From: Obrimoposthia wandeli
Taxonomy: Eukaryota
DNA: 64,000 nucleotides
NCBI GenBank assembly: GCA_977020255.1
Contig: CDROCS010000253.1
Coordinates: 868,001-932,000 of the forward strand
Reading direction: 5' to 3'
Each line of letters begins with the position of its first letter. Within the stretch, counting starts at the first letter, position 1. Below the pieces are notes generated by a model. That model worked only from the letters and a program-made list of their open reading frames with translations. It did not search any database and had not been told where the DNA came from. This document shows, one piece after another, positions 26,757 to 60,772 of this stretch. Position numbers and translations under genes: made by a program.

Positions 26757-27230
26757 CTAAATATCTATCGCTCTGATTAAAAAATACGTTGGCCAAATCT
26801 CTCGTACTTGAGATTCCCATTCCGGATCAGCTCTACCACTCGGTAACTGTAAAAACCAATATTTCGCCCATGTGCGAACAACTTTACCTGACTTACTTAG
26901 CTTCAGCGGAGAGAATTTTCGTTGATAAGCATTGCCATCATACTCAACAACTGCATTATTTTTGGCTCTTTTATGCAAAAAATCTAATGCAATAGTAATA
27001 ATCTCGACCTCAGACGGCGCCATTAATCCTTGTACTTTTAAACAAGCGAGTATCTCAGCTTTCTTTATACTAGCCTGCATATAGTCATCTATATGCGGGG
27101 TATAAACCATACCGGTTAAACCATAAATAGCTCTGCGCTCTCTATCGGCTAGTGCTTTTAAAGGCATGAGTCGTTCATTAATATCATGTAATTCACTGAT
27201 AACATGAAGCTTTGGAATCGATTTAGACAA
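26757..27230 (-). CDS. Hypothetical protein
   Basis: 157-aa ORF filling the gap between two co-oriented genes; no motif recognised; TTG start. Confidence 0.65.
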   Translation of the reverse strand: MSKSIPKLHVISELHDINERLMPLKALADRERRAIYGLTGMVYTPHIDDYMQASIKKAEILACLKVQGLMAPSEVEIITIALDFLHKRAKNNAVVEYDGNAYQRKFSPLKLSKSGKVVRTWAKYWFLQLPSGRADPEWESQVREIWPTYFLIRAIDI

Positions 27231-27276: not shown

Positions 27277-27954
27277 TTAGCTTGGCGGGTCAATGTTATT
27301 AGCAATACTATTATTTAAGCGAAACCAACCCGCGATAGAGTATCGGTCTCGCTTCGCGGGTAATACTTCATGAGGAAACTCTTCACTTAAAAATACCACT
27401 ATAGTGCCAAAATTAGGTATCACGGTAATTGTACTATTATCAATGACAGAAGAGACAGGCCTACTTTTATCATAAATCACTAATTCTCCCCCATCAGATG
27501 AAGCCCACTGTTGATTAAGATACACCACAACAGACAACACCCTATTATCTTCACCTTTAAACGCGTCTTTGTGCTTCTTATAAAAATCGCCTTTTGCGTA
27601 ATGAGAAAAATGACTTTCAAAAGAAAATAAACCAAGAAATAAACGTCTATTTAAATAAGCTTGTAGTGATTCGGTCCAGTTGATCCAAGCACACCCTGCC
27701 TCGCTGTCATTGGTTATCCAACTTATTGCGTCGGTACGAATAAAGTCATTCACAATATGATCTTTACTTCGACCAATGCCTGCACGTTTAAAGTTTTCGG
27801 TTGGCAGCTCGGTGATATGTTGTGATAGCAAGCAGGTTAAGTCTGCGGGCAAAGCGTAAGGACGAATACTGTAGCCCTTGTCGACAATGTCATTGGATAT
27901 TGATTCAAACAGTGATGTGTCACCGCCAGAATGTGTCGTTTGAGCTAGGCTCAA
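27277..27954 (-). CDS. 2OG-Fe(II) oxygenase (prolyl-hydroxylase-like)
   Basis: FYKKHKDAF (HxD), YLN..W...DGGEL, FPHEVLP and RYSIAGWF. Confidence 0.9.
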   Translation of the reverse strand: MSLAQTTHSGGDTSLFESISNDIVDKGYSIRPYALPADLTCLLSQHITELPTENFKRAGIGRSKDHIVNDFIRTDAISWITNDSEAGCAWINWTESLQAYLNRRLFLGLFSFESHFSHYAKGDFYKKHKDAFKGEDNRVLSVVVYLNQQWASSDGGELVIYDKSRPVSSVIDNSTITVIPNFGTIVVFLSEEFPHEVLPAKRDRYSIAGWFRLNNSIANNIDPPS

Positions 27955-28038
27955 CTACATCCTGTCTTAGGAGGTAAAATTAACATTTAATTGATAATTT
28001 AATAAAAGGGAATATGGCTCATAGTAGCACTTTGCAAC

Positions 28039-28070
28039 TACCCGTTACCAATCAAGATGCATGTTTCAGT
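28039..28070 (+). repeat. Truncated terminus of a related ERIC-like subfamily (TACCCGTTACCAATCAAGATGCATG)
   Basis: 16 bp identical to 2824-2839; continues AGATGCA like the left end of the full elements; no partner inverted end seen. Confidence 0.5.
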
Positions 28071-28128
28071 GTTTGTAATCAAGTTAACGTACGTCTGAGT
28101 CTTTAGCCGCAATTGGCTGTTAGTCATA

Positions 28129-28485
28129 TTACCCGCTTGACAATGACTTCACCTTAACGGCATCAATGATGAAGCTTTTGATGTTAGCTAATCGGTAAGG
28201 TTTTTCAATTTTATGCTCAAAGCAACTATCCATCATTACATCGAGCTCTCCAGTGATTAAAATTTTTATCGAATCACACGTGATTGCTTTAGCGACATCT
28301 GTCCCATTTTGGGTTTTTAATCGATAGTCAATAAATATCAAATCTGGGTTGCTCTTATTGCAATATTCTATGGCAGGTGCTTCATCAGTAAAAACAGCAA
28401 GGTCTATTTCGTCTGACTGTAAATATTCTTTGAACATATTACATAGCATCTCTTCATCATCAATATAAACAACATTTATTGGCAT
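28129..28485 (-). CDS. Single-domain response regulator
   Basis: YIDDE, PDLIFIDY (phospho-Asp), LITG and EKP; start lies 1 bp after the kinase stop. Confidence 0.9.
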   Translation of the reverse strand: MPINVVYIDDEEMLCNMFKEYLQSDEIDLAVFTDEAPAIEYCNKSNPDLIFIDYRLKTQNGTDVAKAITCDSIKILITGELDVMMDSCFEHKIEKPYRLANIKSFIIDAVKVKSLSSG

Positions 28486-28486
28486 T

Positions 28487-30328
28487 TTAATCCTTACTAA
28501 TTTTCTTTATTTTTGGAAAATGAATAACAAAACAGGTATTCATATTATTATTGTCGATCGAAATTTTGGCGTCATGATGATCTAAAATCCCCTTTACAAT
28601 AGATAAACCAAGCCCGGTACCGTCCCCGGTATTTTTTGTAGTAAAAAAGGGTTCAAATATTAATAACTGCTTATCTAATGGGATGGTAGGGCCTGCATCG
28701 GTAATTGAAATTGTGTAGTCTTGTGTCGTTTCTGTCACTAAGATCTTAATCCATTTATCCGGAAGTTCTGATAAAGCATCTATCGCATTATTAATTAAGT
28801 TTACAATCACTTGTTCAATTTCTATTTCATTACACAGAATATTACTCTCTTCAATATGATCGCATTGCAGCGTTATCATGCGAAGTTTTAATTTTGGTCT
28901 CGTAAGTACTATGGCTTCATTAATCACACTTTTAAGTGAGCAAACAGTATGTTGGGTTTCTTCATCACTTCGGGAGAATTTTTTCAGACTCTTAACAATA
29001 TGGGTAATTCGATCACAAGATCTTAAAATGACAGCTGATTTTTCCGAAATATCTTCTGGAGACGCAGTAGTATTAGTTAATTGTAATAATTCAGCATAAC
29101 CAGAAATAATACCTAATGGATTATTTATTTCGTGAGCAATACTTGCTGATAACTCGCCAAGTGCGGCAAATTTTGCGTTCATAATACTTTTTTGTCTTTC
29201 TTGATTATACTTTATCTCGGTAATTTTACGTTGATGAATGTCTTGAATAGTGCCCGATATTGTGTCGATTTTTCCATCTTTATAGTTGGCTTTACCATTG
29301 GTATATATCCATTTTATATCACCTTTTGGTGTTCTGGCTTGTAGCTCTAAACCATAAGATTCACCAAACTCTATTACTCGGCTAACGGCTTTCTCAATAA
29401 TGGGTTGGTCTTCAGTAATAAATAATTGTAGTCCTTCGGGTAACATCGGTGTTAATCCGTCAACTTGTTCAACGTCTAATATTCTAAAGGTTTCATTGGT
29501 CCATGTTAGTACACCCGTAGCCACATCCATTTCCCAACCGCCAACTTTTGCAGCAGAACTTGTTTCACTGAGGATCTGAAGGGCCTTTAAGCGGTCATGT
29601 TCACTATTAACTTTGTCGGTTATATCTTGCCTTATGGCAATGTAATTAGAGATTTTCTCATTATTATCGAATATAGGTACTAAAATGCTTTGTACAAAGT
29701 AGTAATCACCATTTTTCTTGCGATTTTTTATGGCGCCTGACCAAATCTTTCCTGATGATATTTTTTTCCATATCTCACTAAAGAAAGAGGCTGGGTGATG
29801 GTCGGAATTGATTAATTTGTGTGTATTACCGATTAGTTCTGCTTTTGAATATCCCGATATTTGACAAAAATTATCATTAACTTTCGTGATAACACCATTT
29901 ATATCGGTTTCAGCATAAATAGTTTCTTGCGTTAATGCGCGTTGCAAATGTTGCAGTTTATTTCGGACTTTAACTTGCTCGGTAATATCACGAGCAACGG
30001 CATAGATAAGCCCTGAATCACCCTCAAAAGAACCATTCCATGAAAAAGTTAAATAGTGATTGTTTTTATGCCGGTATCTATTTTCAAAAAATAAAGAATT
30101 TTGTCCTGAGTTTAATTTGGCAAATTCTTGCACTGTTTTATCGACATCATCTGGGTGTATAAAATCATGGATGGGCGCGAAGAGTAATTCTTCTTCGCTA
30201 TAGCCTAGTACTTGGGTGAATGAGGGGCTAATGGTTTGGAAATAGCCCTCTGTATTAGCTACACATAACATATCAATAGATAAATTAAAAAATTTCTCGT
30301 AGATGTTCTTATTTGCTTTGATTGGCAT
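28487..30328 (-). CDS. Cytoplasmic triple-PAS sensor histidine kinase
   Basis: Three PAS/PAC blocks, H-box AHEINNPL, N-box QVIVNLINNAIDA, DAGP, FEPFFTTK and GTGLGLS; no TM segment. Confidence 0.93.
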   Translation of the reverse strand: MPIKANKNIYEKFFNLSIDMLCVANTEGYFQTISPSFTQVLGYSEEELLFAPIHDFIHPDDVDKTVQEFAKLNSGQNSLFFENRYRHKNNHYLTFSWNGSFEGDSGLIYAVARDITEQVKVRNKLQHLQRALTQETIYAETDINGVITKVNDNFCQISGYSKAELIGNTHKLINSDHHPASFFSEIWKKISSGKIWSGAIKNRKKNGDYYFVQSILVPIFDNNEKISNYIAIRQDITDKVNSEHDRLKALQILSETSSAAKVGGWEMDVATGVLTWTNETFRILDVEQVDGLTPMLPEGLQLFITEDQPIIEKAVSRVIEFGESYGLELQARTPKGDIKWIYTNGKANYKDGKIDTISGTIQDIHQRKITEIKYNQERQKSIMNAKFAALGELSASIAHEINNPLGIISGYAELLQLTNTTASPEDISEKSAVILRSCDRITHIVKSLKKFSRSDEETQHTVCSLKSVINEAIVLTRPKLKLRMITLQCDHIEESNILCNEIEIEQVIVNLINNAIDALSELPDKWIKILVTETTQDYTISITDAGPTIPLDKQLLIFEPFFTTKNTGDGTGLGLSIVKGILDHHDAKISIDNNNMNTCFVIHFPKIKKISKD

Positions 30329-30429
30329 CGTTAAACTCTATAAAAGCGGGTGTTATATCAAACGGACTAATTTATTAACCCGGTTGGTATTATTAATCAT
30401 CGTAAAATGGTGTTGATAAAGGTGCGTTT

Positions 30430-30742
30430 TATACCCGCTCCACTTGAAGAGAAAGGATTCAGCTGGAATTATAAACGCCTTTAGGCAAGGCATTGATTGA
30501 AGAGAATAGTTATTCTATTGTCAAAATCAATAACGCAGTATAAAGCGTTTATAAACCAGCCCTTTGGAGAAAACTAAGCAAAAAATACCCGTCGTTACAT
30601 TTGTTGCTAAGGAGGCTACATGGATGGTGCTATTAGAAAATGCAGGAGCTTATTCTCTTGAATAACCATTAACAAAAAATGTGCCTTGATTATGATTCGC
30701 TCAGGTTTCTTGAAACGATCATCTTCAAGTGGAACGGGTATA
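30430..30742 (+). mobile_element. ERIC-like/MITE-like element, copy 1 (313 bp)
   Basis: Terminal inverted repeats TATACCCGCTCCACTTGAAGA / TCTTCAAGTGGAACGGGTATA (1 mismatch); body aligns with copies at 38364 and 60459. Confidence 0.9.
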
Positions 30743-30745
30743 TAG

Positions 30746-31324
30746 TTAAGCAATGGCCTTTTTTTTCTCAACAAATTGTGTGATCGTTTCTTTTAAAAGC
30801 GCAAAATTTAGTGGTTTGCCAAAACAAGTTTCAGCCCCTAATTCAACTATCCTATTTACATTATCATCCGTTAATGCGCCGGTCATTGCAATAACACTAA
30901 TATTTGCTGTTGCAGGCGTACTTTTAATACGGTGGCAAATAGAAAAGCCATTAATGCCAGCCATCATTAAATCTAGCATGACCAAATCAGGCTTAAAAGT
31001 ATGCAGTAGATCGCCTGCATCAAAAGGATTATAAGCTATTTTCATTTTAGCGTGAGGAAAAAGGTTTTCTAGGAACTGAGTAAGCATATCGGCAAATTCT
31101 TTATCATCTTCAATGATTAAAATAGAGAAGCTGTTTTTTACACTTGCTTGAGGTTGAGACATTAAGGATAAGATGTCGTTTTTATCGAAACGCCTATGAC
31201 CACCTGGTGTCATAATAAAAGGTAGTCGACCAATTTGAGCCCAATGGCGAATAGTCGTTGGCGCTACATGCAATAATTTAGCCGCTTCTGCAGGTGTTAA
31301 CAGAGACTTTTTACTTATATCCAA
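30746..31324 (-). CDS. Response regulator with N-terminal BldC/excisionase-like HTH and C-terminal REC domain
   Basis: LLTPAEAAKLLHVAPTTIRHWAQIGRLPFIMTPGGHRRF followed by IIEDD, DLVMLD, AMTG and GKP. Confidence 0.9.
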   Translation of the reverse strand: MDISKKSLLTPAEAAKLLHVAPTTIRHWAQIGRLPFIMTPGGHRRFDKNDILSLMSQPQASVKNSFSILIIEDDKEFADMLTQFLENLFPHAKMKIAYNPFDAGDLLHTFKPDLVMLDLMMAGINGFSICHRIKSTPATANISVIAMTGALTDDNVNRIVELGAETCFGKPLNFALLKETITQFVEKKKAIA

Positions 31325-31451
31325 TCTATTTATCCTTAATAAAATAAACCATTTTTACTATAGCAGTCTATTATTCCTTAATATTAACCTAGATCAATGT
31401 AGTCTTTTTTTTATTGAGCTCAAATCAAATTTCAGCTATATTCCACGAGCA

Positions 31452-31478
31452 TTGTCGTTTTTATCGTTTTTGTCGATT
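31452..31478. promoter_or_regulatory. Three tandem 9-bp direct repeats TTGTCGTTT / TTATCGTTT / TTGTCGATT; putative promoter TTGTCG-19 bp-TATAAT (31470-31500)
   Basis: Counted directly in the divergent intergenic region between the HTH-REC gene and the aer-like gene. Confidence 0.65.
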
Positions 31479-31549
31479 CTTATGAATGGTACGATATAAT
31501 TTTGTAACTAGGATGTAAACCTCATTAATTTATATAACAGGAAATCATA

Positions 31550-33085
31550 ATGACAAAGATAAAGCAATCGATTATCAATGAGGAAGTTAATTTTCAAAAC
31601 GGTGTGGAATTAATTTCTACAACGGATAAAAATGGCGTTATTACCTATGCAAACCCTGAATTCTGTCGAATTGCCGGTTTCTCTCTTGATGAACTTGTTG
31701 GACAACATCATAACATTGTAAGGCATCCTGATATGCCAGCTGATGCTTTTAAAGATTTATGGGAAAACTTAAAGTTAGGCTTACCTTGGCGCGGAGTGGT
31801 TAAAAACCGCTGTAAAGATGGTCGTTATTATTGGGTAGATGCCTTTGTAACACCCATTTTCGAATCTGCTGAACTCATTGGCTATCAATCGGTCAGAACA
31901 CGCCTAGACGATGAGACCAAAAAAAATGCAATATTGTCTTATCAAGCATTACAAAATGGCAAGTCATTAAATAAATGGTACCAAAATGCGACCGTTAAAA
32001 ACGTAGCCTACTGGACAGGAAGTATTACCACGTTAGTCAGCGCGATGTATTATCCATACATGATGTTCTTGTTACCTTTATTACCCTTTATAACGTATAA
32101 AAATGAAATTATAGATACGCCCAAATATCTTAAAAAGCTCGCTAATGAATACGACAGTGTTTCACGCCTAATTTATTGTGGCACTAAACCTCAAGGCATT
32201 GCAGATTTTCATTTAAAGATTGCTGAAGGTAAAATAAAAACAATTCTAGGACGCATTATCGATAGTAGTAATTTACTCAGCTCTGGTGCTAGCAATCTAG
32301 AGGAAGCGGCACGAATAGCTAAAGAAGGCACTGAGCAAGAAACTGCCGAATTACATCAAGTATCGACTGCCGTTGAAGAAATGGTTGCCACAATTGATGA
32401 GGTTGCGCAAAACACAACGTTCACCTCACAAAAAGTTAACCAAGCGCATTCTGATTGTGAAATAGCAACACAAGCCATGCACCTGACCATGGAAAAAGTA
32501 AACCTATTAGCTAAAGAAGTCGCTAACTCGGCATCTTCAGCAACAGAGCTCGCGAGTGAAGTAGAAAAAGTTGGTAGCATTATGCATGAAATTCAGGGGA
32601 TTGCAGACCAAACAAACTTATTAGCACTCAATGCTGCAATCGAAGCGGCAAGAGCTGGAGAGCATGGCCGTGGCTTTTCCGTTGTAGCCGATGAAGTTCG
32701 GGCATTATCAAGTAGAACCCATGCAGCAACAGAGCAAATACAAAGCTCAATATCAGAAATGCAAAATACTTTATTGTCTTGGGTACAAACAATGACTAAA
32801 GGTAAAGAGTCTGCTGAGAGCTGTGTTGAAAAAGCGACAGAAGCTCATAATGTTGTTGATAAAGTTTATTCGTCAATTACTGATATTTCTGACTTAGCGA
32901 TTCAAATATCAACCGCATCAGAGGAGCAAAGCATGGTATCTCAAGAGATCAGCCGCAATATTATTAACATCAGTGATGCTTCTCAAAATAACCTTCATCA
33001 AGCCAATACCGTAGAAAGTGAGACAATAAACATTAAAACAAGAGCCAACGCCCTTGGGGCGTTAGGCCAAGCTTTTAATGGATAA
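31550..33085 (+). CDS. aer: Aer-type PAS methyl-accepting chemotaxis/aerotaxis receptor
   Basis: LISTTD..G.ITYAN..F..IAGF...ELVGQHHNIVRHPDMP, YYWVDAFVTP, short hydrophobic hairpin, IADQTNLLALNAAIEAARAGEHGRGFSVVADEVR. Confidence 0.9.
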   Translation: MTKIKQSIINEEVNFQNGVELISTTDKNGVITYANPEFCRIAGFSLDELVGQHHNIVRHPDMPADAFKDLWENLKLGLPWRGVVKNRCKDGRYYWVDAFVTPIFESAELIGYQSVRTRLDDETKKNAILSYQALQNGKSLNKWYQNATVKNVAYWTGSITTLVSAMYYPYMMFLLPLLPFITYKNEIIDTPKYLKKLANEYDSVSRLIYCGTKPQGIADFHLKIAEGKIKTILGRIIDSSNLLSSGASNLEEAARIAKEGTEQETAELHQVSTAVEEMVATIDEVAQNTTFTSQKVNQAHSDCEIATQAMHLTMEKVNLLAKEVANSASSATELASEVEKVGSIMHEIQGIADQTNLLALNAAIEAARAGEHGRGFSVVADEVRALSSRTHAATEQIQSSISEMQNTLLSWVQTMTKGKESAESCVEKATEAHNVVDKVYSSITDISDLAIQISTASEEQSMVSQEISRNIINISDASQNNLHQANTVESETINIKTRANALGALGQAFNG

Positions 33086-33090
33086 AAATT

Positions 33091-35697
33091 ATGACTGATT
33101 ATGCAAACTTATTAATGTCTTTAACCAATAGTTCATCGCTAGATTCAGGAAGTATGAGCCAGTTAATACAAGAAGGACTTTACATTACCCCTGCTTTATT
33201 TTCTGTCGACCGTGCAGGACTTTGGGTATTAAATAAAGACGAAGAAGCTTACCTTTGTGAAGCCGATTTTTTTGATGGCATAATTAACCATATAGCGCCT
33301 CAACCGTTAACTAAACAAGAAGATGCACAGTCTTTTTCGTTTTTAGAACATACCTCGGAAATTATTATAAACAATAATTTTACCCATGAGTCATTTGGCA
33401 TAAATACGAGCAAATTATTATCTGTATTTCAGCTTTCTTCTATGCTTCTTATTCCTTTACAAATTAAAGGCAAAAATAGAGGCTTTATCTTTTTAGGTGA
33501 CAGTGAAAAAAGTACCGAATGGTCTACCGATGTACTGTTTGCCAGTAGAATTTTAGCGCAGCTGTTTGGACGTGCACTATTAGCACTTGATAATACCGCC
33601 GTTGAAACTAAACTCCAGCATCAATACCAATTGATGAATGAAATAGAGAGACTTGCCAAAATTGGTGGTTGGGACTATGAAATATCAACAGGAAAAACAC
33701 ATTGGACTGATGAAACATATCGGATTTATGGATTATCGCCTGATGAAGAAATAACGCTTGAGCAAACGGCCAAATTTTACAGTTCAGAAGCCAAAGAAAA
33801 AATAAAAAGTGTCTTTGAATTAGCCATAAACCAATTAAAACCTTATCAAGTAGAGTTGCCTTTTATTGATGTACAGGGAAATCATAAGTGGGCAAAAACC
33901 ACGGGGCAAATAAGAAGTAATGCTCAAGGTGTTGCCACACATGTTTACGGGGCGTTCGAAGATATAACCGAACAAAAACGATTACTCGACTCAGAAAGGT
34001 CGACTAATCAAAACTTAAAAACCATTGTTGATAATTTAAACGACAGTATTGTTACTATTTCAAGTAAAGGCATTATTTTATCTGCCAATAGAATGGTGGA
34101 AAAAACATTTGGCTATTTACAGCAAGAGTTGATTGGCCAAAATGTGTCCATATTAATGCCAACGCCCTTTGTTTCTCAACATGATAAATATATGCAGAAC
34201 TACCTCAAAACAGGAGATGCTAAAATCATAGGGATAGGGAGAGAACTTCCTGCGATGAAAAAAGATGGCACAACCTTCCCTATGGAATTATCAATATCAG
34301 AGGTGCTGCACGGAAATGAAAGAGTATTTATTGGCATTGTTCGGGACATAACAGAGAGAAAAAAGGCAGAACAAGATATTCATCAACTTGCTTATTATGA
34401 TGAAATAACAGGCGTAATGAACCGTTATTCTCTTGAACGTGATTTAAAAAAATGTTTCGATAAATCCTTACTCTTAAATGAAAATATCACCACGATGTTA
34501 ATAAATCTGGATAAGTTTTCTCAAGTTAACTTAATTTATGGTGATGATATCGGTGACGTAATTCTAAAAGAAACGGCAAAAAGACTCAATGAACGTTTAC
34601 CTTCATCGGTAGTTACCTATAGAAGCAGTGCCGATAGTTTTTATATTCTTTTAAAATTAAGGGGTGCTGCAGGTTTAGATAACGCACCTATAGTTACCAA
34701 TGAAGAATTAGCAGAACAGATTCTTCATGAAATTAATCAAACCATTATGGTCAATCAGCACGCAATTAATGTACAAGCAAGTATAGGAATATTAAACATT
34801 CCTGCTAAAGAAATAGACTACATCGATATCAAACCTTTACTAGAATTAGCTGTTTTTAATGCCAAAAATAAAGGTGGAAATAATTATGTATTTGCCAGCA
34901 ATAATGACACCAGTTTACTTAAAAGACATTCAGAATTATCGTTAGCAATGAAAAGTAGTCAGTTTATCAGTGAACTCAATATTGTCTTGCAGCCTCAATA
35001 TTCTACCCAAGGTAATATTGTTGGCTCAGAAGCATTGGTTCGGTGGCAGTCCGCATCATTAGGCGGAATATCCCCTGCTGAATTTATCCCCTTAGCAGAA
35101 AAGAATGGCGCTATTATTGAGTTAGGTAATTGGATGATCGATAAAGCCTGTATTTTGTTAACAAAAAGGCGTACATTTTCAAAAGAATCATCCCCTATTT
35201 CTGTCAATATAAGTGCTAAGCAAATTGCTCAGCCAAACTTTGTCGATAACCTTTTAGCTAGCCTTGATAAATACCAAATACCCTACTCTGAACTGTTACT
35301 TGAATTAACAGAAAGTGCCCTGGTTACCGACTTGAAACTTGTCGTGGGCAAAATGGAGTTATTAAAAAGAAAGGGCATTCTGTTCTCAATTGATGATTTT
35401 GGTACCGGATATTCAAGCTTAAATTATATTCATCATTTGCCAATAATAGAGTTAAAGATTGATAAGTGTTTTATTGATGATATAAAAAATGAAACCGATG
35501 ATGTCCCTATCATCAATACCATATTGCAAATGGCGAAGTCGTTAAAGTTAAGAGTTGTCGCTGAAGGTGTTGAATCTAAAGAGCAACTGAATTATTTAGC
35601 TGCGCACGGTTGTGATGTTATACAAGGCTATTACTTTTCCAAACCTCTAAACTCTGCTCAATGGTTAGATAAATGGAAAACTAAGGTAAGCATGTAG
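33091..35697 (+). CDS. GAF-PAS-PAS-GGDEF(degenerate)-EAL protein, probable c-di-GMP phosphodiesterase
   Basis: FixL-like PAS (LMP...QHD.Y...YL.TG...IIGIGRE); GGDEF site replaced by SSADSF; intact EAL, DDFGTGYSSL and AEGVE. Confidence 0.9.
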   Translation: MTDYANLLMSLTNSSSLDSGSMSQLIQEGLYITPALFSVDRAGLWVLNKDEEAYLCEADFFDGIINHIAPQPLTKQEDAQSFSFLEHTSEIIINNNFTHESFGINTSKLLSVFQLSSMLLIPLQIKGKNRGFIFLGDSEKSTEWSTDVLFASRILAQLFGRALLALDNTAVETKLQHQYQLMNEIERLAKIGGWDYEISTGKTHWTDETYRIYGLSPDEEITLEQTAKFYSSEAKEKIKSVFELAINQLKPYQVELPFIDVQGNHKWAKTTGQIRSNAQGVATHVYGAFEDITEQKRLLDSERSTNQNLKTIVDNLNDSIVTISSKGIILSANRMVEKTFGYLQQELIGQNVSILMPTPFVSQHDKYMQNYLKTGDAKIIGIGRELPAMKKDGTTFPMELSISEVLHGNERVFIGIVRDITERKKAEQDIHQLAYYDEITGVMNRYSLERDLKKCFDKSLLLNENITTMLINLDKFSQVNLIYGDDIGDVILKETAKRLNERLPSSVVTYRSSADSFYILLKLRGAAGLDNAPIVTNEELAEQILHEINQTIMVNQHAINVQASIGILNIPAKEIDYIDIKPLLELAVFNAKNKGGNNYVFASNNDTSLLKRHSELSLAMKSSQFISELNIVLQPQYSTQGNIVGSEALVRWQSASLGGISPAEFIPLAEKNGAIIELGNWMIDKACILLTKRRTFSKESSPISVNISAKQIAQPNFVDNLLASLDKYQIPYSELLLELTESALVTDLKLVVGKMELLKRKGILFSIDDFGTGYSSLNYIHHLPIIELKIDKCFIDDIKNETDDVPIINTILQMAKSLKLRVVAEGVESKEQLNYLAAHGCDVIQGYYFSKPLNSAQWLDKWKTKVSM

Positions 35698-37564
35698 GAA
35701 TAACTTCTTTTATTAACTTAGGTTGCTGCTCGATAATATCAACAGCAATAGCTGCTGAGCCCGGTCTACGTGGATCTGCCGTACCTAAAAATACGCCATT
35801 ATGTTTCATGATGGCTTGTAAGCTACCCAATGAACTAGATACTTTGACGTTGTAGCCTTTCGCTTTTAAGATATTAACGGTATCAGCAGGGATATTCCTT
35901 TCAACAGACAACACATCGGGTTGCCATTGATGATGCACTCGTGGAGCATTGGTAGCTTCAGCAATATTCATTTCAAAATATAAAACATTAACCAATTGTT
36001 GAAATACCGAGGTAATGATTTTACTGCCGCCAGGCGTACCGGTAGCAAGGTAGGGTTCACCATCTTTTAGCACTATAGTAGGCGTCATTGAGCTTAGCGG
36101 TCGTTTTTTTGCTTCAATGGCATTAGCTATACCGCCAATTAAACCGTAACTATTTGGACTACCCGGTTTTACCGAAAAATCATCCATGGTGTTGTTCAGT
36201 AAAATTCCTGTACCTGGAATAGTGATACCACTACCGTAATTGTGATTTAAGGTATAAGTACTACTCACCACATTACCCGCGGCATCCATTACAGAAAAAT
36301 GCGTCGTATCAGGGCTTTCATATTTACTGGGTTCTCCAGCTTTGATATCACTTGAAGGGGTTATTTTATTCCGCTTAATATTTTTACTGAGTTCTTTTGC
36401 ATAGGTTTTGCTAGTTAAGCCCCTACTCGGTACGTTGGCAAAAGTTGGGTCGCCTAAAAAGGAACTTCTGTCGGCATAGGCACGCTTAAATATTTCAGTT
36501 TGCAGATGTATCAGTGCTGCTGAGCCTTGCTGAATGTTCTCTAAGTTAAGTGTTTCAAACATATTTAACATTTGAATAAGGTGAACGCCACCTGAACTAG
36601 GCGGTGGCATAGTTAAAATTTCAAATCCTTGAAATGTGCCGCGGATAGGCGCTACTTCATTCACTTTATAATCAGCTAAGTCTTGTGCGGTAATAAGACC
36701 TCCCCCCTTCTCCATTGCAGCGACAATGCTTTTTGCAATATCACCTTGATAAAACCCATCTTTACCATGCTCTCGTAAATATGCGAAACTATTCGCGAGG
36801 TCTTCTTGCACCCAAATGTCACCGGCCTGATAAGGTTGGCAATTTTCTTTTAAAAAGACTCTGCATGTTTCGGGACTGCGTGATAAAAAAATTTGTTCTT
36901 TGTAAAAAAAACGTGCCATATCGTCATCAACAACGATGCCAGTTCTAGCGAGTTTCTCTGCGGGTTTAATGACCTCAGACCAAGACATTGAACCATAGTT
37001 TTCAAGAGCATAATGTAGACCAGCTACTGTGCCGGGTACGCCTGAAGCTGATAATGTTTTCAGTGATTTATTCGCTATCGGATAGCCAAACTCATCAAGA
37101 AAAACATCTTTGTATGCTGAAGCAGGAGCTGTTTCTCGATAATCAATCGCAATTATTTTCTTTTCATCACCTAAATGAACCAGCATAAAACCACCACCCG
37201 CTAAGTTTCCAGCGCGTGGTAAAACAACGGATAATGCAAAACCTACCGCTACCGCAGCATCAACTGCGTTGCCGCCTTGCCTAAGAATATCGGCCCCCAC
37301 TTCACTGGCTATGCGCTTTTGACTAACAACCATGCCTTTTCTGCCGATAATAGGGTGATTGACATCATGATAATCAACCAATTGCCATAAACGAGGCAGC
37401 TCAGTTTTGCTAACTTGCTGGATTGCTGTAGTAGCGACACTATTGGTAGCGATGAATGCCAAAAAACAACAGCTTAATTTTATTACCGTATATCGAGACT
37501 TTTTTGGGAGGGTATCTTTGTCGAATAATCGATTATGAATATTGGTAATAAAATTATTTTTCAT
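35681..37564 (-). CDS. ggt: Gamma-glutamyltransferase; its 3' end overlaps the EAL gene by 17 bp
   Basis: GGNAVDAAVA, GGGFML, DYRETAP, GVPGTVAG, PPPSSGG, catalytic TTHFSV, LSSMTP and GTPGGSKI. Confidence 0.96.
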   Translation of the reverse strand: MKNNFITNIHNRLFDKDTLPKKSRYTVIKLSCCFLAFIATNSVATTAIQQVSKTELPRLWQLVDYHDVNHPIIGRKGMVVSQKRIASEVGADILRQGGNAVDAAVAVGFALSVVLPRAGNLAGGGFMLVHLGDEKKIIAIDYRETAPASAYKDVFLDEFGYPIANKSLKTLSASGVPGTVAGLHYALENYGSMSWSEVIKPAEKLARTGIVVDDDMARFFYKEQIFLSRSPETCRVFLKENCQPYQAGDIWVQEDLANSFAYLREHGKDGFYQGDIAKSIVAAMEKGGGLITAQDLADYKVNEVAPIRGTFQGFEILTMPPPSSGGVHLIQMLNMFETLNLENIQQGSAALIHLQTEIFKRAYADRSSFLGDPTFANVPSRGLTSKTYAKELSKNIKRNKITPSSDIKAGEPSKYESPDTTHFSVMDAAGNVVSSTYTLNHNYGSGITIPGTGILLNNTMDDFSVKPGSPNSYGLIGGIANAIEAKKRPLSSMTPTIVLKDGEPYLATGTPGGSKIITSVFQQLVNVLYFEMNIAEATNAPRVHHQWQPDVLSVERNIPADTVNILKAKGYNVKVSSSLGSLQAIMKHNGVFLGTADPRRPGSAAIAVDIIEQQPKLIKEVIPTCLP

Positions 37565-38363: not shown

Positions 38364-38678
38364 TATACCCGTTCCACTTGAAGATGCAGGATTCAGCTGG
38401 AATTATAAACGCCTTTAGGCAAGGCATTGATTGAAGAGAATAGTTATTCTATTGTCGAAATCAATAACGTGGCATAAAGCGTTTATAAACCAGCCCTTTG
38501 GGGAGACCTGAGCAAAAAACATTCATCGTTACATTTGTTTTTAAGGACGCTACATGGATGTAACTTATTAGAGAATGCAGGAGCACATTCTCCCGAATAA
38601 CCCTTAACAAAAAAATGTGCCTTGATTATGATTCGCTCCGGCTTCCTGAAACGAGCATCTTCAAGTGGAGCGGGTATA
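38364..38678 (+). mobile_element. ERIC-like/MITE-like element, copy 2 (315 bp)
   Basis: 23-bp terminal inverted repeats TATACCCGTTCCACTTGAAGATG / CATCTTCAAGTGGAGCGGGTATA; best-preserved internal hairpins. Confidence 0.92.
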
Positions 38679-38862
38679 TACATAAATTTTATTTAAGTTA
38701 TTTTTAATGATTATAAATTTAACAACTGCATTCCCCTAGTTCTAGTATCGGTGATAGCAGTGTTCGATCTGAACCATTGGAATGATATTTATTCATTTTT
38801 GGTGTAGTGTGGTCCTGAACGGCAACAAGACTCTTTGATAAAAACTAAAGGAAATAATAATA

Positions 38863-60248: not shown

Positions 60249-60458
60249 GATGTATCCTTAAAGCATATCAGTACATTATTCAGGAGTACGACAATGGATA
60301 TTTTAACTCTTGTATAGTATAGGATATTGGGCCGTTTTTTTCGTGTAGTGCTTCTCTGCTTGGTTGGCAATAGTGGGCAATGCCTCTCTTATTAGGTATT
60401 GCTGGGTTAGGATAACCAAATACGAGGGCACGTTAAATAGATTAGCACATCGACAATA

Positions 60459-60772
60459 TATACCCGCTCCACTTGAAGATGCTCGTTTCAGGAAACCTGA
60501 GCGAATCATAATCAAGGCACATTTTTTGTTAAGGGTTGCTCAGGAGAATGTGCTCCTGCACTCTCTAACAAGCTACATCCATGTAGCGTCCTTAAAAACA
60601 AATGTAACGACGGGTATGCTTTGCTCATTTTTCCCCAAAGGGCTGTTTTATAAACGCTTTATGCTGCGTTATTGATTTCGACAATAGAATAACTATTCTC
60701 TTCAATCAATGCCTTGCCTAAAGGCATTTCTAATGCCAGCTGAATCCTGCATCTTCAAGTGGAACGGGTATA
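60459..60772 (-). mobile_element. ERIC-like/MITE-like element, copy 3 (314 bp, inverted relative to copies 1 and 2)
   Basis: Terminal inverted repeats TATACCCGCTCCACTTGAAGATG / CATCTTCAAGTGGAACGGGTATA; body is the reverse complement of copies 1 and 2. Confidence 0.92.

Follow-up and report, generated by a model that had tools for sequence, protein, structure and literature searches.

The coordination between movement in oxygen gradients and the decision to stay or leave that is governed by cyclic di-GMP (c-di-GMP) is known piecemeal, for instance from PilZ-bearing receptors of Azospirillum and from the aer-1/PP_2258 pair of Pseudomonas putida. This pair is a bicistronic operon in which aer-1 (PP_2257) encodes an Aer-like receptor and PP_2258 a sensory-box c-di-GMP protein, the loss of which affects motility (PMC3621253, citing Sarand et al. 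2008). In Pseudomonas aeruginosa, the methyl-accepting chemotaxis protein (MCP) PA2573 contacts the receiver (REC) domain of the HD-GYP-type protein PA2572, which is encoded beside the kinase PA2571 (PMC3411652). Here we describe five signalling genes packed into 7.5 kb (positions 28129-35697) of a 64,000-nucleotide stretch, hereafter the window, which covers positions 868,001 to 932,000 of contig CDROCS010000253.1 in assembly GCA_977020255.1, deposited under the name Obrimoposthia wandeli. The genes form two divergent arms: the right one encodes an Aer-type receptor and a c-di-GMP phosphodiesterase (PDE), and the left one a helix-turn-helix (HTH)-REC response regulator, a histidine kinase and a stand-alone receiver. 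We consider it reasonably likely, if well short of certain, that together they constitute a conserved cytoplasmic oxygen/redox signalling module.

The contig is at least 4.6 Mb long and belongs to a 1.35-Gb assembly of 6912 contigs. Since the genes of the window share 80-99% identity with their counterparts in Colwellia demingiae ACAM 459, the host chromosome is that of a Colwellia. The five open reading frames (ORFs), located at 28129-28485 (-), 28487-30328 (-), 30746-31324 (-), 31550-33085 (+) and 33091-35697 (+), were recovered by ORF prediction and by Pfam and NCBIfam scans as an earlier note, made from the letters of this DNA, had described them, including the gap of 5 bp that separates the two genes of the right arm (33086-33090).

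The aer gene (31550-33085, + strand) encodes a 511-aa aerotaxis/energy-taxis transducer with a flavin adenine dinucleotide (FAD)-type PAS domain, a membrane hairpin and an MCP signalling domain. Pfam detected both the PAS domain and an MCPsignal domain (130 bits over residues 319-476), in agreement with the Aer-like MCP that had been proposed, and the translation shows a hydrophobic stretch at residues ~150-185 that fits a membrane hairpin without a periplasmic domain. The PAS domain matches that of Escherichia coli Aer (PDB 8DIK) with an E value of 1e-34, and the full-length Aer chain was matched over residues 17-150. The RHPDMP stretch is retained, and the residues equivalent to R57, H58, D60, H53, N85 and R115 are aligned and identical. 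The flavin-pocket residues reported with structure 8DIK include H53, N85 and R115 (PMC9668731). The match and the conserved pocket sustain the earlier assignment, and we predict that this PAS domain is of the FAD type. The receptor is a full-length Aer orthologue and shares 93% identity with that of C. demingiae.

The second gene of the right arm (33091-35697, + strand) encodes an 868-aa protein that had been described as a PAS-EAL protein. Both of these domains are present, but the description was incomplete, since the protein also contains a GAF domain, a second PAS domain and a degenerate GGDEF domain, in the order GAF (33154-33579), PAS-A (33661-33990), heme-type PAS-B (34012-34386), degenerate GGDEF (34390-34881; Pfam, 78.6 bits) and EAL (34972-35646; Pfam, 215 bits), all on the + strand. 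Pfam recognised the two PAS domains as well. The GAF assignment is based on a predicted model and a Foldseek search. Residues 22-163 gave sub-threshold matches to three GAF models, and a prediction from the single sequence was unusable (predicted local distance difference test, pLDDT, 39), whereas an alignment of 12 homologues yielded a model with a pLDDT of 74 that Foldseek matched to GAF domains (E ~1e-6, probability 1.0). As modelled, the N-terminus has a GAF fold.

Over their whole length, residues 191-433 of the PDE align with the FixL tandem PAS region (8JS5; FixL residues 26-268) with an E value of 2e-41, and PAS-B matches the FixL heme domains 1D06 (E 4e-31) and 1DP6 (E 2e-29). His364, encoded at 34180-34182, is aligned with the proximal His in the F-alpha helix of FixL and is invariant among 21 homologues. 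The sequence IIGIGR, corresponding to the IIGxGR stretch with the Arg220 equivalent, is also retained. PAS-B is therefore a predicted FixL-type heme PAS domain, as had been suggested on first reading. The GGDEF-EAL half resembles DosP (E 1e-71). Its GGDEF signature reads SADSF. Of the 20 other homologues, 18 have a similarly degenerate, xADSF-like motif, which makes 19 of 21 when this protein is included; the domain is predicted to be inactive as a diguanylate cyclase. The EAL motifs (EAL/ExL, N, ExxE, DDFGTGYSS, KxD, EGVE and QG) are complete in this protein and in the 20 homologues, and thus the EAL domain is predicted to be catalytically active and to hydrolyse c-di-GMP. In three other genomes (G133, G095 and G052; loci L005, L006 and L007), homologues of the PDE occur as tandem pairs with a matching PAS-B that keeps the His; the second copy of each pair has no PAS-A, and where the Arg220 equivalent would stand it carries Gln (G-K-P-Q-E-L).

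Facing aer, the first gene of the left arm (30746-31324, - strand) encodes a 192-aa response regulator composed of a BldC/excisionase-type winged HTH (residues 6-57) and a REC domain (residues 68-181). Pfam identified HTH_17 (44.8 bits; cut-off 27), MerR and Response_reg (67.8 bits). The description of the HTH as BldC-like is borne out insofar as HTH_BldC (NF033787) is the best NCBIfam model, though its score of 61.7 bits lies below the family cut-off of 77, and the best solved match to the HTH is BldC itself (6AMK/6AMA; E 1e-9). The REC domain is near-identical to the crystallised protein 3CNB, annotated as a 'DNA-binding response regulator, merR family' (E 9e-72, residues 61-191). We know of no functional study of the 3CNB protein. 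HTH_17-REC regulators are catalogued in databases, and a literature search for response regulators with an HTH_17-type domain turned up no functional study.

The divergent control region between the two arms (31325-31549) measures 225 bp from the TTG start codon of the regulator gene, as had been stated, and is well conserved in C. demingiae. It contains three direct repeats, likewise conserved there, with a 9-bp period (TTGTCGTTT / TTATCGTTT / TTGTCGATT; ~31452-31478), located just upstream of a TATAAT-like hexamer that precedes aer. The 13-mer ATCGTTTTTGTCG (31463-31475) covers two of these repeats and is found once in the window, where 0.08 copies are expected. Across the 1.01 Mb of loci compared, the exact 13-mer has only two occurrences, in the spacer between aer and the regulator gene of genome G123 and ~125 bp upstream of the regulator gene of genome G072, and C. 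demingiae carries a variant with one mismatch. BldC assembles head to tail into multimers on 9-bp direct repeats (PMC5859096), and hence the repeats in the spacer would be a reasonable operator for a BldC-like HTH. By analogy, we infer that the regulator binds them and regard them as a candidate operator. In contigs of run X1, the control region also occurs in a second form that carries small deletions at 31450-31491.

The other two genes of the left arm complete a two-component system. Pfam confirmed the types proposed for the three left-arm proteins, i.e., HTH_17/MerR plus REC, three PAS domains plus HisKA and HATPase, and a single REC. The kinase gene (28487-30328, - strand) encodes a soluble 613-aa protein in which Pfam and NCBIfam recognise PAS1 (~29972-30304), PAS2 (29615-29914), PAS3 (29213-29557), HisKA (28961-29161; 51 bits) and HATPase (28511-28831; 75 bits), all on the - strand. 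Its translation includes an H-box with the conserved His, and the two receivers supply the remaining two-component residues (DD, D, T/S and K): the translations of the stand-alone receiver and of the REC domain of the regulator each show the acidic pair and the phospho-acceptor Asp, together with the Thr and Lys.

The kinase contains the motif W.G.IKNRKKNG.YYFV that had been read as an Aer/NifL pattern. The likeness to Aer holds; the likeness to NifL is much weaker (E 2e-9). The best solved match of PAS2 is PAS-A of MmoS (3EWK, crystallised with FAD; 96 bits), followed by the E. coli Aer PAS domain with 88 bits. PAS2 retains the flavin-pocket His, Asn and Arg (H53/N85/R115 of Aer, equivalent to H132/N164/R195 of MmoS; list in PMC9668731), and it reads N-S-D-H-H, the MmoS pattern (N-S-G-Y-H), where Aer has R-H-P-D. 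As PAS2 best matches MmoS and NifL is far weaker, we prefer to call it MmoS/Aer type, and it is predicted from these residues to be of the FAD-binding type. The ligands of PAS1 and PAS3 could not be assigned by structure matches.

The stand-alone receiver gene (28129-28485, - strand) starts 2 bp after the end of the kinase gene and encodes a 118-aa protein (Response_reg, 42 bits) with D9/D10, D53, T78 and K95. In G123, the kinase encoded after the regulator gene is a 773-aa hybrid with the architecture 3xPAS-HisKA-HATPase-REC, and in G072, too, kinase and equivalent receiver form a single protein. Given that the G123 hybrid equals the 613-aa kinase plus the 118-aa receiver, the latter looks like the detached receiver of a hybrid kinase. 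The phosphorelay that had also been envisaged fared worse: Pfam detected no Hpt domain among 12 ORFs of the block and its surroundings, and so a multi-step His-Asp-His-Asp phosphorelay is not supported, an Hpt protein encoded elsewhere being possible.

To what extent these genes travel together was analysed in two samples, 151 genomes from the GTDB family to which C. demingiae belongs and 401 gammaproteobacterial genomes, with thresholds of E <= 1e-110 for PDE homologues and E <= 1e-95 for Aer homologues. Within the family, 20 of the 151 genomes have PDE homologues, and 20 neighbourhoods were annotated. An Aer orthologue lies directly upstream of the PDE gene on the same strand in C. demingiae (G001), G123, G010, G032 and one of the two copies of G072, and the gap between them, 5 bp here, is 2-55 bp elsewhere. 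Aer orthologues are present in 95 of the 151 family genomes. The regulator is found in 12 of them and in 37 of the 401 class genomes (~9%), and being rarer than the Aer and PDE homologues it makes an informative anchor.

C. demingiae has all five genes together, and both flanks of the block differ there, with no 2-oxoglutarate (2OG) oxygenase gene on the left and four extra ORFs before the gamma-glutamyltranspeptidase gene on the right. The assembly contains another Colwellia strain (C4567:108-4010) that keeps the same relative arrangement, with 84% identity for the PDE and 86% for the regulator, on a contig that ends inside the PDE gene. In G123, aer and the PDE gene are divergent from the regulator gene and a hybrid kinase gene; in G072, a single strand encodes the regulator, aer, the heme PDE and two hybrid kinases with PAS domains. 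The synteny survey proposed with the first interpretation therefore finds the arms linked elsewhere, with regulator, aer and PDE together in C. demingiae, G123 and G072 and analogous trios in G120 and G040, where the order is regulator, Aer-like receptor and PAS-GGDEF-EAL protein. C. demingiae, G076 and G118 also have a paralogous set composed of a regulator, a kinase whose PAS domain is nearest to PAS-B of the PDE, and a REC-EAL protein, which in C. demingiae is accompanied by a divergent MCP gene. Among the annotated loci of the class, the commonest order is regulator, REC-HD-GYP protein (HD_5), soluble MCP of ~410 aa, small REC and PAS kinase.

Within 6 kb of 34 regulator genes, many of them on loci cut by contig ends, we counted an MCP gene in 19 cases and, in 18 cases each, an EAL or HD-GYP PDE gene and a kinase gene. 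Two or more of these kinds were present in 18 cases, and all three in 9. The corresponding figures in control loci were 4 of 25 for the kinase (Fisher p 0.004), 1 of 8 for the PDE (p 0.04) and 3 of 17 for the MCP (p 0.009), where the controls are loci anchored on unlinked Aer or PDE genes, a small set and not random loci. In a maximum-likelihood tree of 35 regulators, the context with aer and an EAL gene falls in two strongly supported clades and requires 2 changes, and none of 500 label shuffles gave a number as low.

From these data, we propose the following operation for the module. The aer and PDE genes would be co-transcribed, and therefore energy taxis and c-di-GMP turnover would be expressed together. 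The kinase would read redox and other cytoplasmic signals and phosphorylate the HTH-REC regulator, with the stand-alone receiver acting as a competing phosphate sink or modulator. The phosphorylated regulator would then bind the 9-bp-period repeats in the 225-bp spacer and control aer and the PDE gene, and probably also its own gene. Gene order, domain content, retained cofactor residues, synteny, the conserved operator-like element and the MITE-like insertion described below are observations of this analysis. We infer the co-transcription, the phosphorylation partners, the DNA binding and the ligands, whether O2 or else NO, CO or a redox signal, and the signs of the responses are not predictable from sequence.

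The first alternative is that only aer and the PDE gene make a functional unit, and that the regulator, the kinase and the receiver are an independent two-component system controlling other genes. A number of observations point in this direction or weigh against a five-gene module. The PDE homologues other than those listed above stand alone or as tandem pairs; none of the 8 unlinked Aer loci sampled, including that of the Colwellia-like genome G076 with a receptor 88% identical, has the other four genes; G010 has the aer-PDE pair without the regulator, while the contig of G032 ends too early to tell. Likewise, the regulator homologues are often found without an Aer or EAL protein nearby, and the kinases are not orthologous between genomes, as the one in G123 shares 24% identity with that of the window and those of G072 and G120 are other hybrids. 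As for the candidate operator, the 13-mer of G123 is in the opposite orientation, and neither the 13-mer nor the pattern T[GA]TCG-N4-T[GA]TCG was found upstream of the more distant regulator homologues. On the other hand, the regulator, an Aer-type receptor and an EAL protein are together in six loci distributed over two clades of the regulator tree, the 13-mer has been preserved ahead of the regulator gene, a position that both here and in G123 corresponds to the shared spacer, and the five genes are together in C. demingiae despite its different flanks. For these reasons we regard the independence of the two arms as unlikely, although it is the likeliest of the alternatives. The five-gene hub is, however, a recurrent option and not an obligate unit, because most Aer orthologues and PDE homologues stand alone. 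The interpretation given in the earlier note, that of a one-locus hub, is partly supported, with the linkage of the arms and the conserved element in the control region in its favour.

A second alternative accepts the module and disputes the signal, in the sense that the heme PAS would read NO, CO or redox and the PAS domains of the kinase would bind metabolites instead of flavin. Arg206 of Bradyrhizobium japonicum FixL contacts a heme propionate. The PDE has Asn in its place, at a position that is variable among the homologues, and in PAS2 of the kinase the residues equivalent to R57, H58 and D60 of Aer are N, S and H; both substitutions speak for this alternative and against the main reading. 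Moreover, PAS1 and PAS3 lack an assignable ligand, the PDE has an extra GAF domain whose ligand is likewise unassigned, and the ligand specificity of a heme PAS cannot be read from its sequence. Nevertheless, the proximal His, the IIGxGR stretch and the overall similarity to FixL are all kept, the Aer PAS domain is very close to that of E. coli, and PAS2 conserves the three residues that the pockets of Aer and MmoS have in common, so that a module devoted to other signals has, in our opinion, a low probability. The third alternative, that the receptor signals mainly by contact with the stand-alone receiver, the HTH-REC regulator or the PDE and not via CheA to the flagellar motor, draws on the two-hybrid contact between PA2573 and PA2572 (PMC3411652) and on the class-wide operons, headed by the regulator gene, with their REC-HD-GYP protein, soluble MCP, small REC and PAS kinase, but it is quite improbable for a full-length Aer orthologue whose relatives mostly stand alone like ordinary chemoreceptors.

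The left arm of the proposed oxygen/redox module has a particularity in this strain. The spacer from the stop codon of the regulator gene to the start of the kinase gene measures 417 bp (30329-30745) and contains a repeat of ~313 bp (30430-30744) that resembles a miniature inverted-repeat transposable element (MITE), with 32-nt terminal inverted repeats (TATACCCG...; 30430-30461 and 30711-30742) whose arms are 81% complementary. In C. demingiae, this spacer is ~57 bp long and has no MITE at that site, and thus the insertion is strain-specific. The left arm is not contiguous, and an unbroken left-arm operon is not supported, since the MITE breaks it in this strain. By consensus matches, the coding strand of the spacer has two terminator-like hairpins, one of them within the MITE, and a promoter-like site precedes the kinase gene. 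The insertion probably means that the kinase and receiver genes of this strain are transcribed apart from the regulator gene.

Elements of the MITE family, ~315 bp long, number at least 40 in this chromosome, and other contigs carry further ones. The depth of the assembled contigs spikes over the MITE in all four runs, consistent with its high copy number. The window holds three copies (30430-30744, 38364-38680 and 60457-60772), and that at 38364-38680, located after the DUF4442 gene, is also present in C. demingiae (L002, 18116-18432). A regulator paralogue with 37% identity elsewhere in the chromosome (C253:3964441-3964977) has a copy (3964141-3964412) within ~30 bp of its 3' end, and in G118 a related element (L029, 7798-8063) lies ~100 bp upstream of the regulator gene. 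This proximity to regulator paralogues may reflect a target-site preference or be a coincidence.

The block is flanked by unrelated housekeeping genes, which on the left encode a MOSC protein, an aldo-keto reductase, a 157-aa protein without Pfam match and a 2OG-Fe(II) oxygenase, and on the right a gamma-glutamyltranspeptidase, a DUF4442 protein and an OpuAC protein. The 2OG-Fe(II) oxygenase gene (27277-27954, - strand; Pfam 2OG-FeII_Oxy_3) is located between the stand-alone receiver gene and the 157-aa ORF; it was considered as a member of the block and rejected, because C. demingiae has no such gene at that position. The 157-aa ORF (26757-27230, - strand) is conserved, with 85% identity in C. 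demingiae, where it lies directly downstream of the receiver gene with a gap of ~60 bp; it may therefore be part of the left-arm operon. It was also considered as an Hpt candidate, for which nothing was found in its favour. At their 3' ends, the PDE gene and the convergent gamma-glutamyltranspeptidase ORF share 17 bp (35681-35697), while in C. demingiae ~4.3 kb with four ORFs separate the two genes. An Rfam scan of 27500-36500 gave no match at E <= 0.1.

The neighbourhoods of the regulator invite a broader and clearly more tentative view, in which we have limited confidence. BldC-type HTH-REC regulators might define a widespread gammaproteobacterial cassette in which a chemoreceptor-like protein, an EAL or HD-GYP PDE and a PAS kinase are wired to a direct-repeat-binding regulator. 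In Colwellia, a genuine Aer and a heme PDE of the FixL type would have joined the cassette, and a single phosphorylation state would then govern transcription, aerotaxis and the breakdown of c-di-GMP; receptor and receivers might also interact directly and so bypass CheA. The literature was searched for a recurrent linkage of HTH_17-REC regulators with chemoreceptors, c-di-GMP PDEs and PAS kinases, and for the combination of Aer, a FixL-type PDE and a BldC-like regulator with a conserved operator-like element, and neither was found described. The locus also offers a first indication of the functional setting of HTH_17/BldC-like-REC response regulators, of which one receiver structure (3CNB) has been solved. 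With a flavin-type receptor, a heme-type PDE, a flavin-type kinase, a transcription factor and a candidate operator in 7.5 kb, the coupling of taxis and c-di-GMP can be tested directly, and in a psychrophilic marine bacterium.

All the parts of the proposed oxygen/redox module are of known kinds, namely Aer, a FixL/DosP-type PDE, an MmoS-type PAS domain, an HTH_17-REC regulator and a MITE, and the aer-PDE operon has a precedent. The receptor has the same architecture (PAS, membrane hairpin and MCP domain) and length as E. coli Aer, but unlike its E. coli counterpart the Colwellia gene has a PDE gene 5 bp downstream and faces the gene of a response regulator. The PDE has in common with FixL the tandem PAS region and the proximal His, although the output is a kinase in FixL and an EAL domain here, and with DosP, itself a heme-PAS protein, the degenerate GGDEF and the intact EAL. 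It is set apart by the extra N-terminal GAF domain, the Asn in the position of FixL Arg206 and the location of its gene beside aer. PAS2 of the kinase shares with PAS-A of Methylococcus MmoS the N-S-x-x-H stretch and the His/Asn/Arg pocket; MmoS, however, is a far larger hybrid kinase in a copper/methane-monooxygenase circuit, unlike the Colwellia kinase. Similarly, BldC is a stand-alone domain of 68 residues whereas the Colwellia HTH is fused to a receiver, and the 9-bp-period repeats of the spacer resemble the direct-repeat sites of BldC but differ in sequence from its AATT-rich consensus. The 3CNB protein, a crystallised member of the same family as the regulator, is represented by the receiver alone.

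At the level of gene organization, the PA2571-PA2572-PA2573 locus of P. aeruginosa, with its adjacent kinase, REC-HD-GYP-type protein and MCP, is like the class-wide neighbourhoods of the regulator, a likeness drawn from its description and not from sequence; no HTH-REC gene is described there, and the HD-GYP domain of PA2572 is degenerate. A parallel for the right arm is the P. putida aer-1/PP_2258 pair, which, again by description and not by sequence, shares the plan of an operon for a receptor and a c-di-GMP protein. The predicted Colwellia operon differs from it in that its PDE carries a GAF domain and a predicted FixL-type heme PAS, and in its link with the genes of a kinase, a receiver and an HTH-REC regulator.

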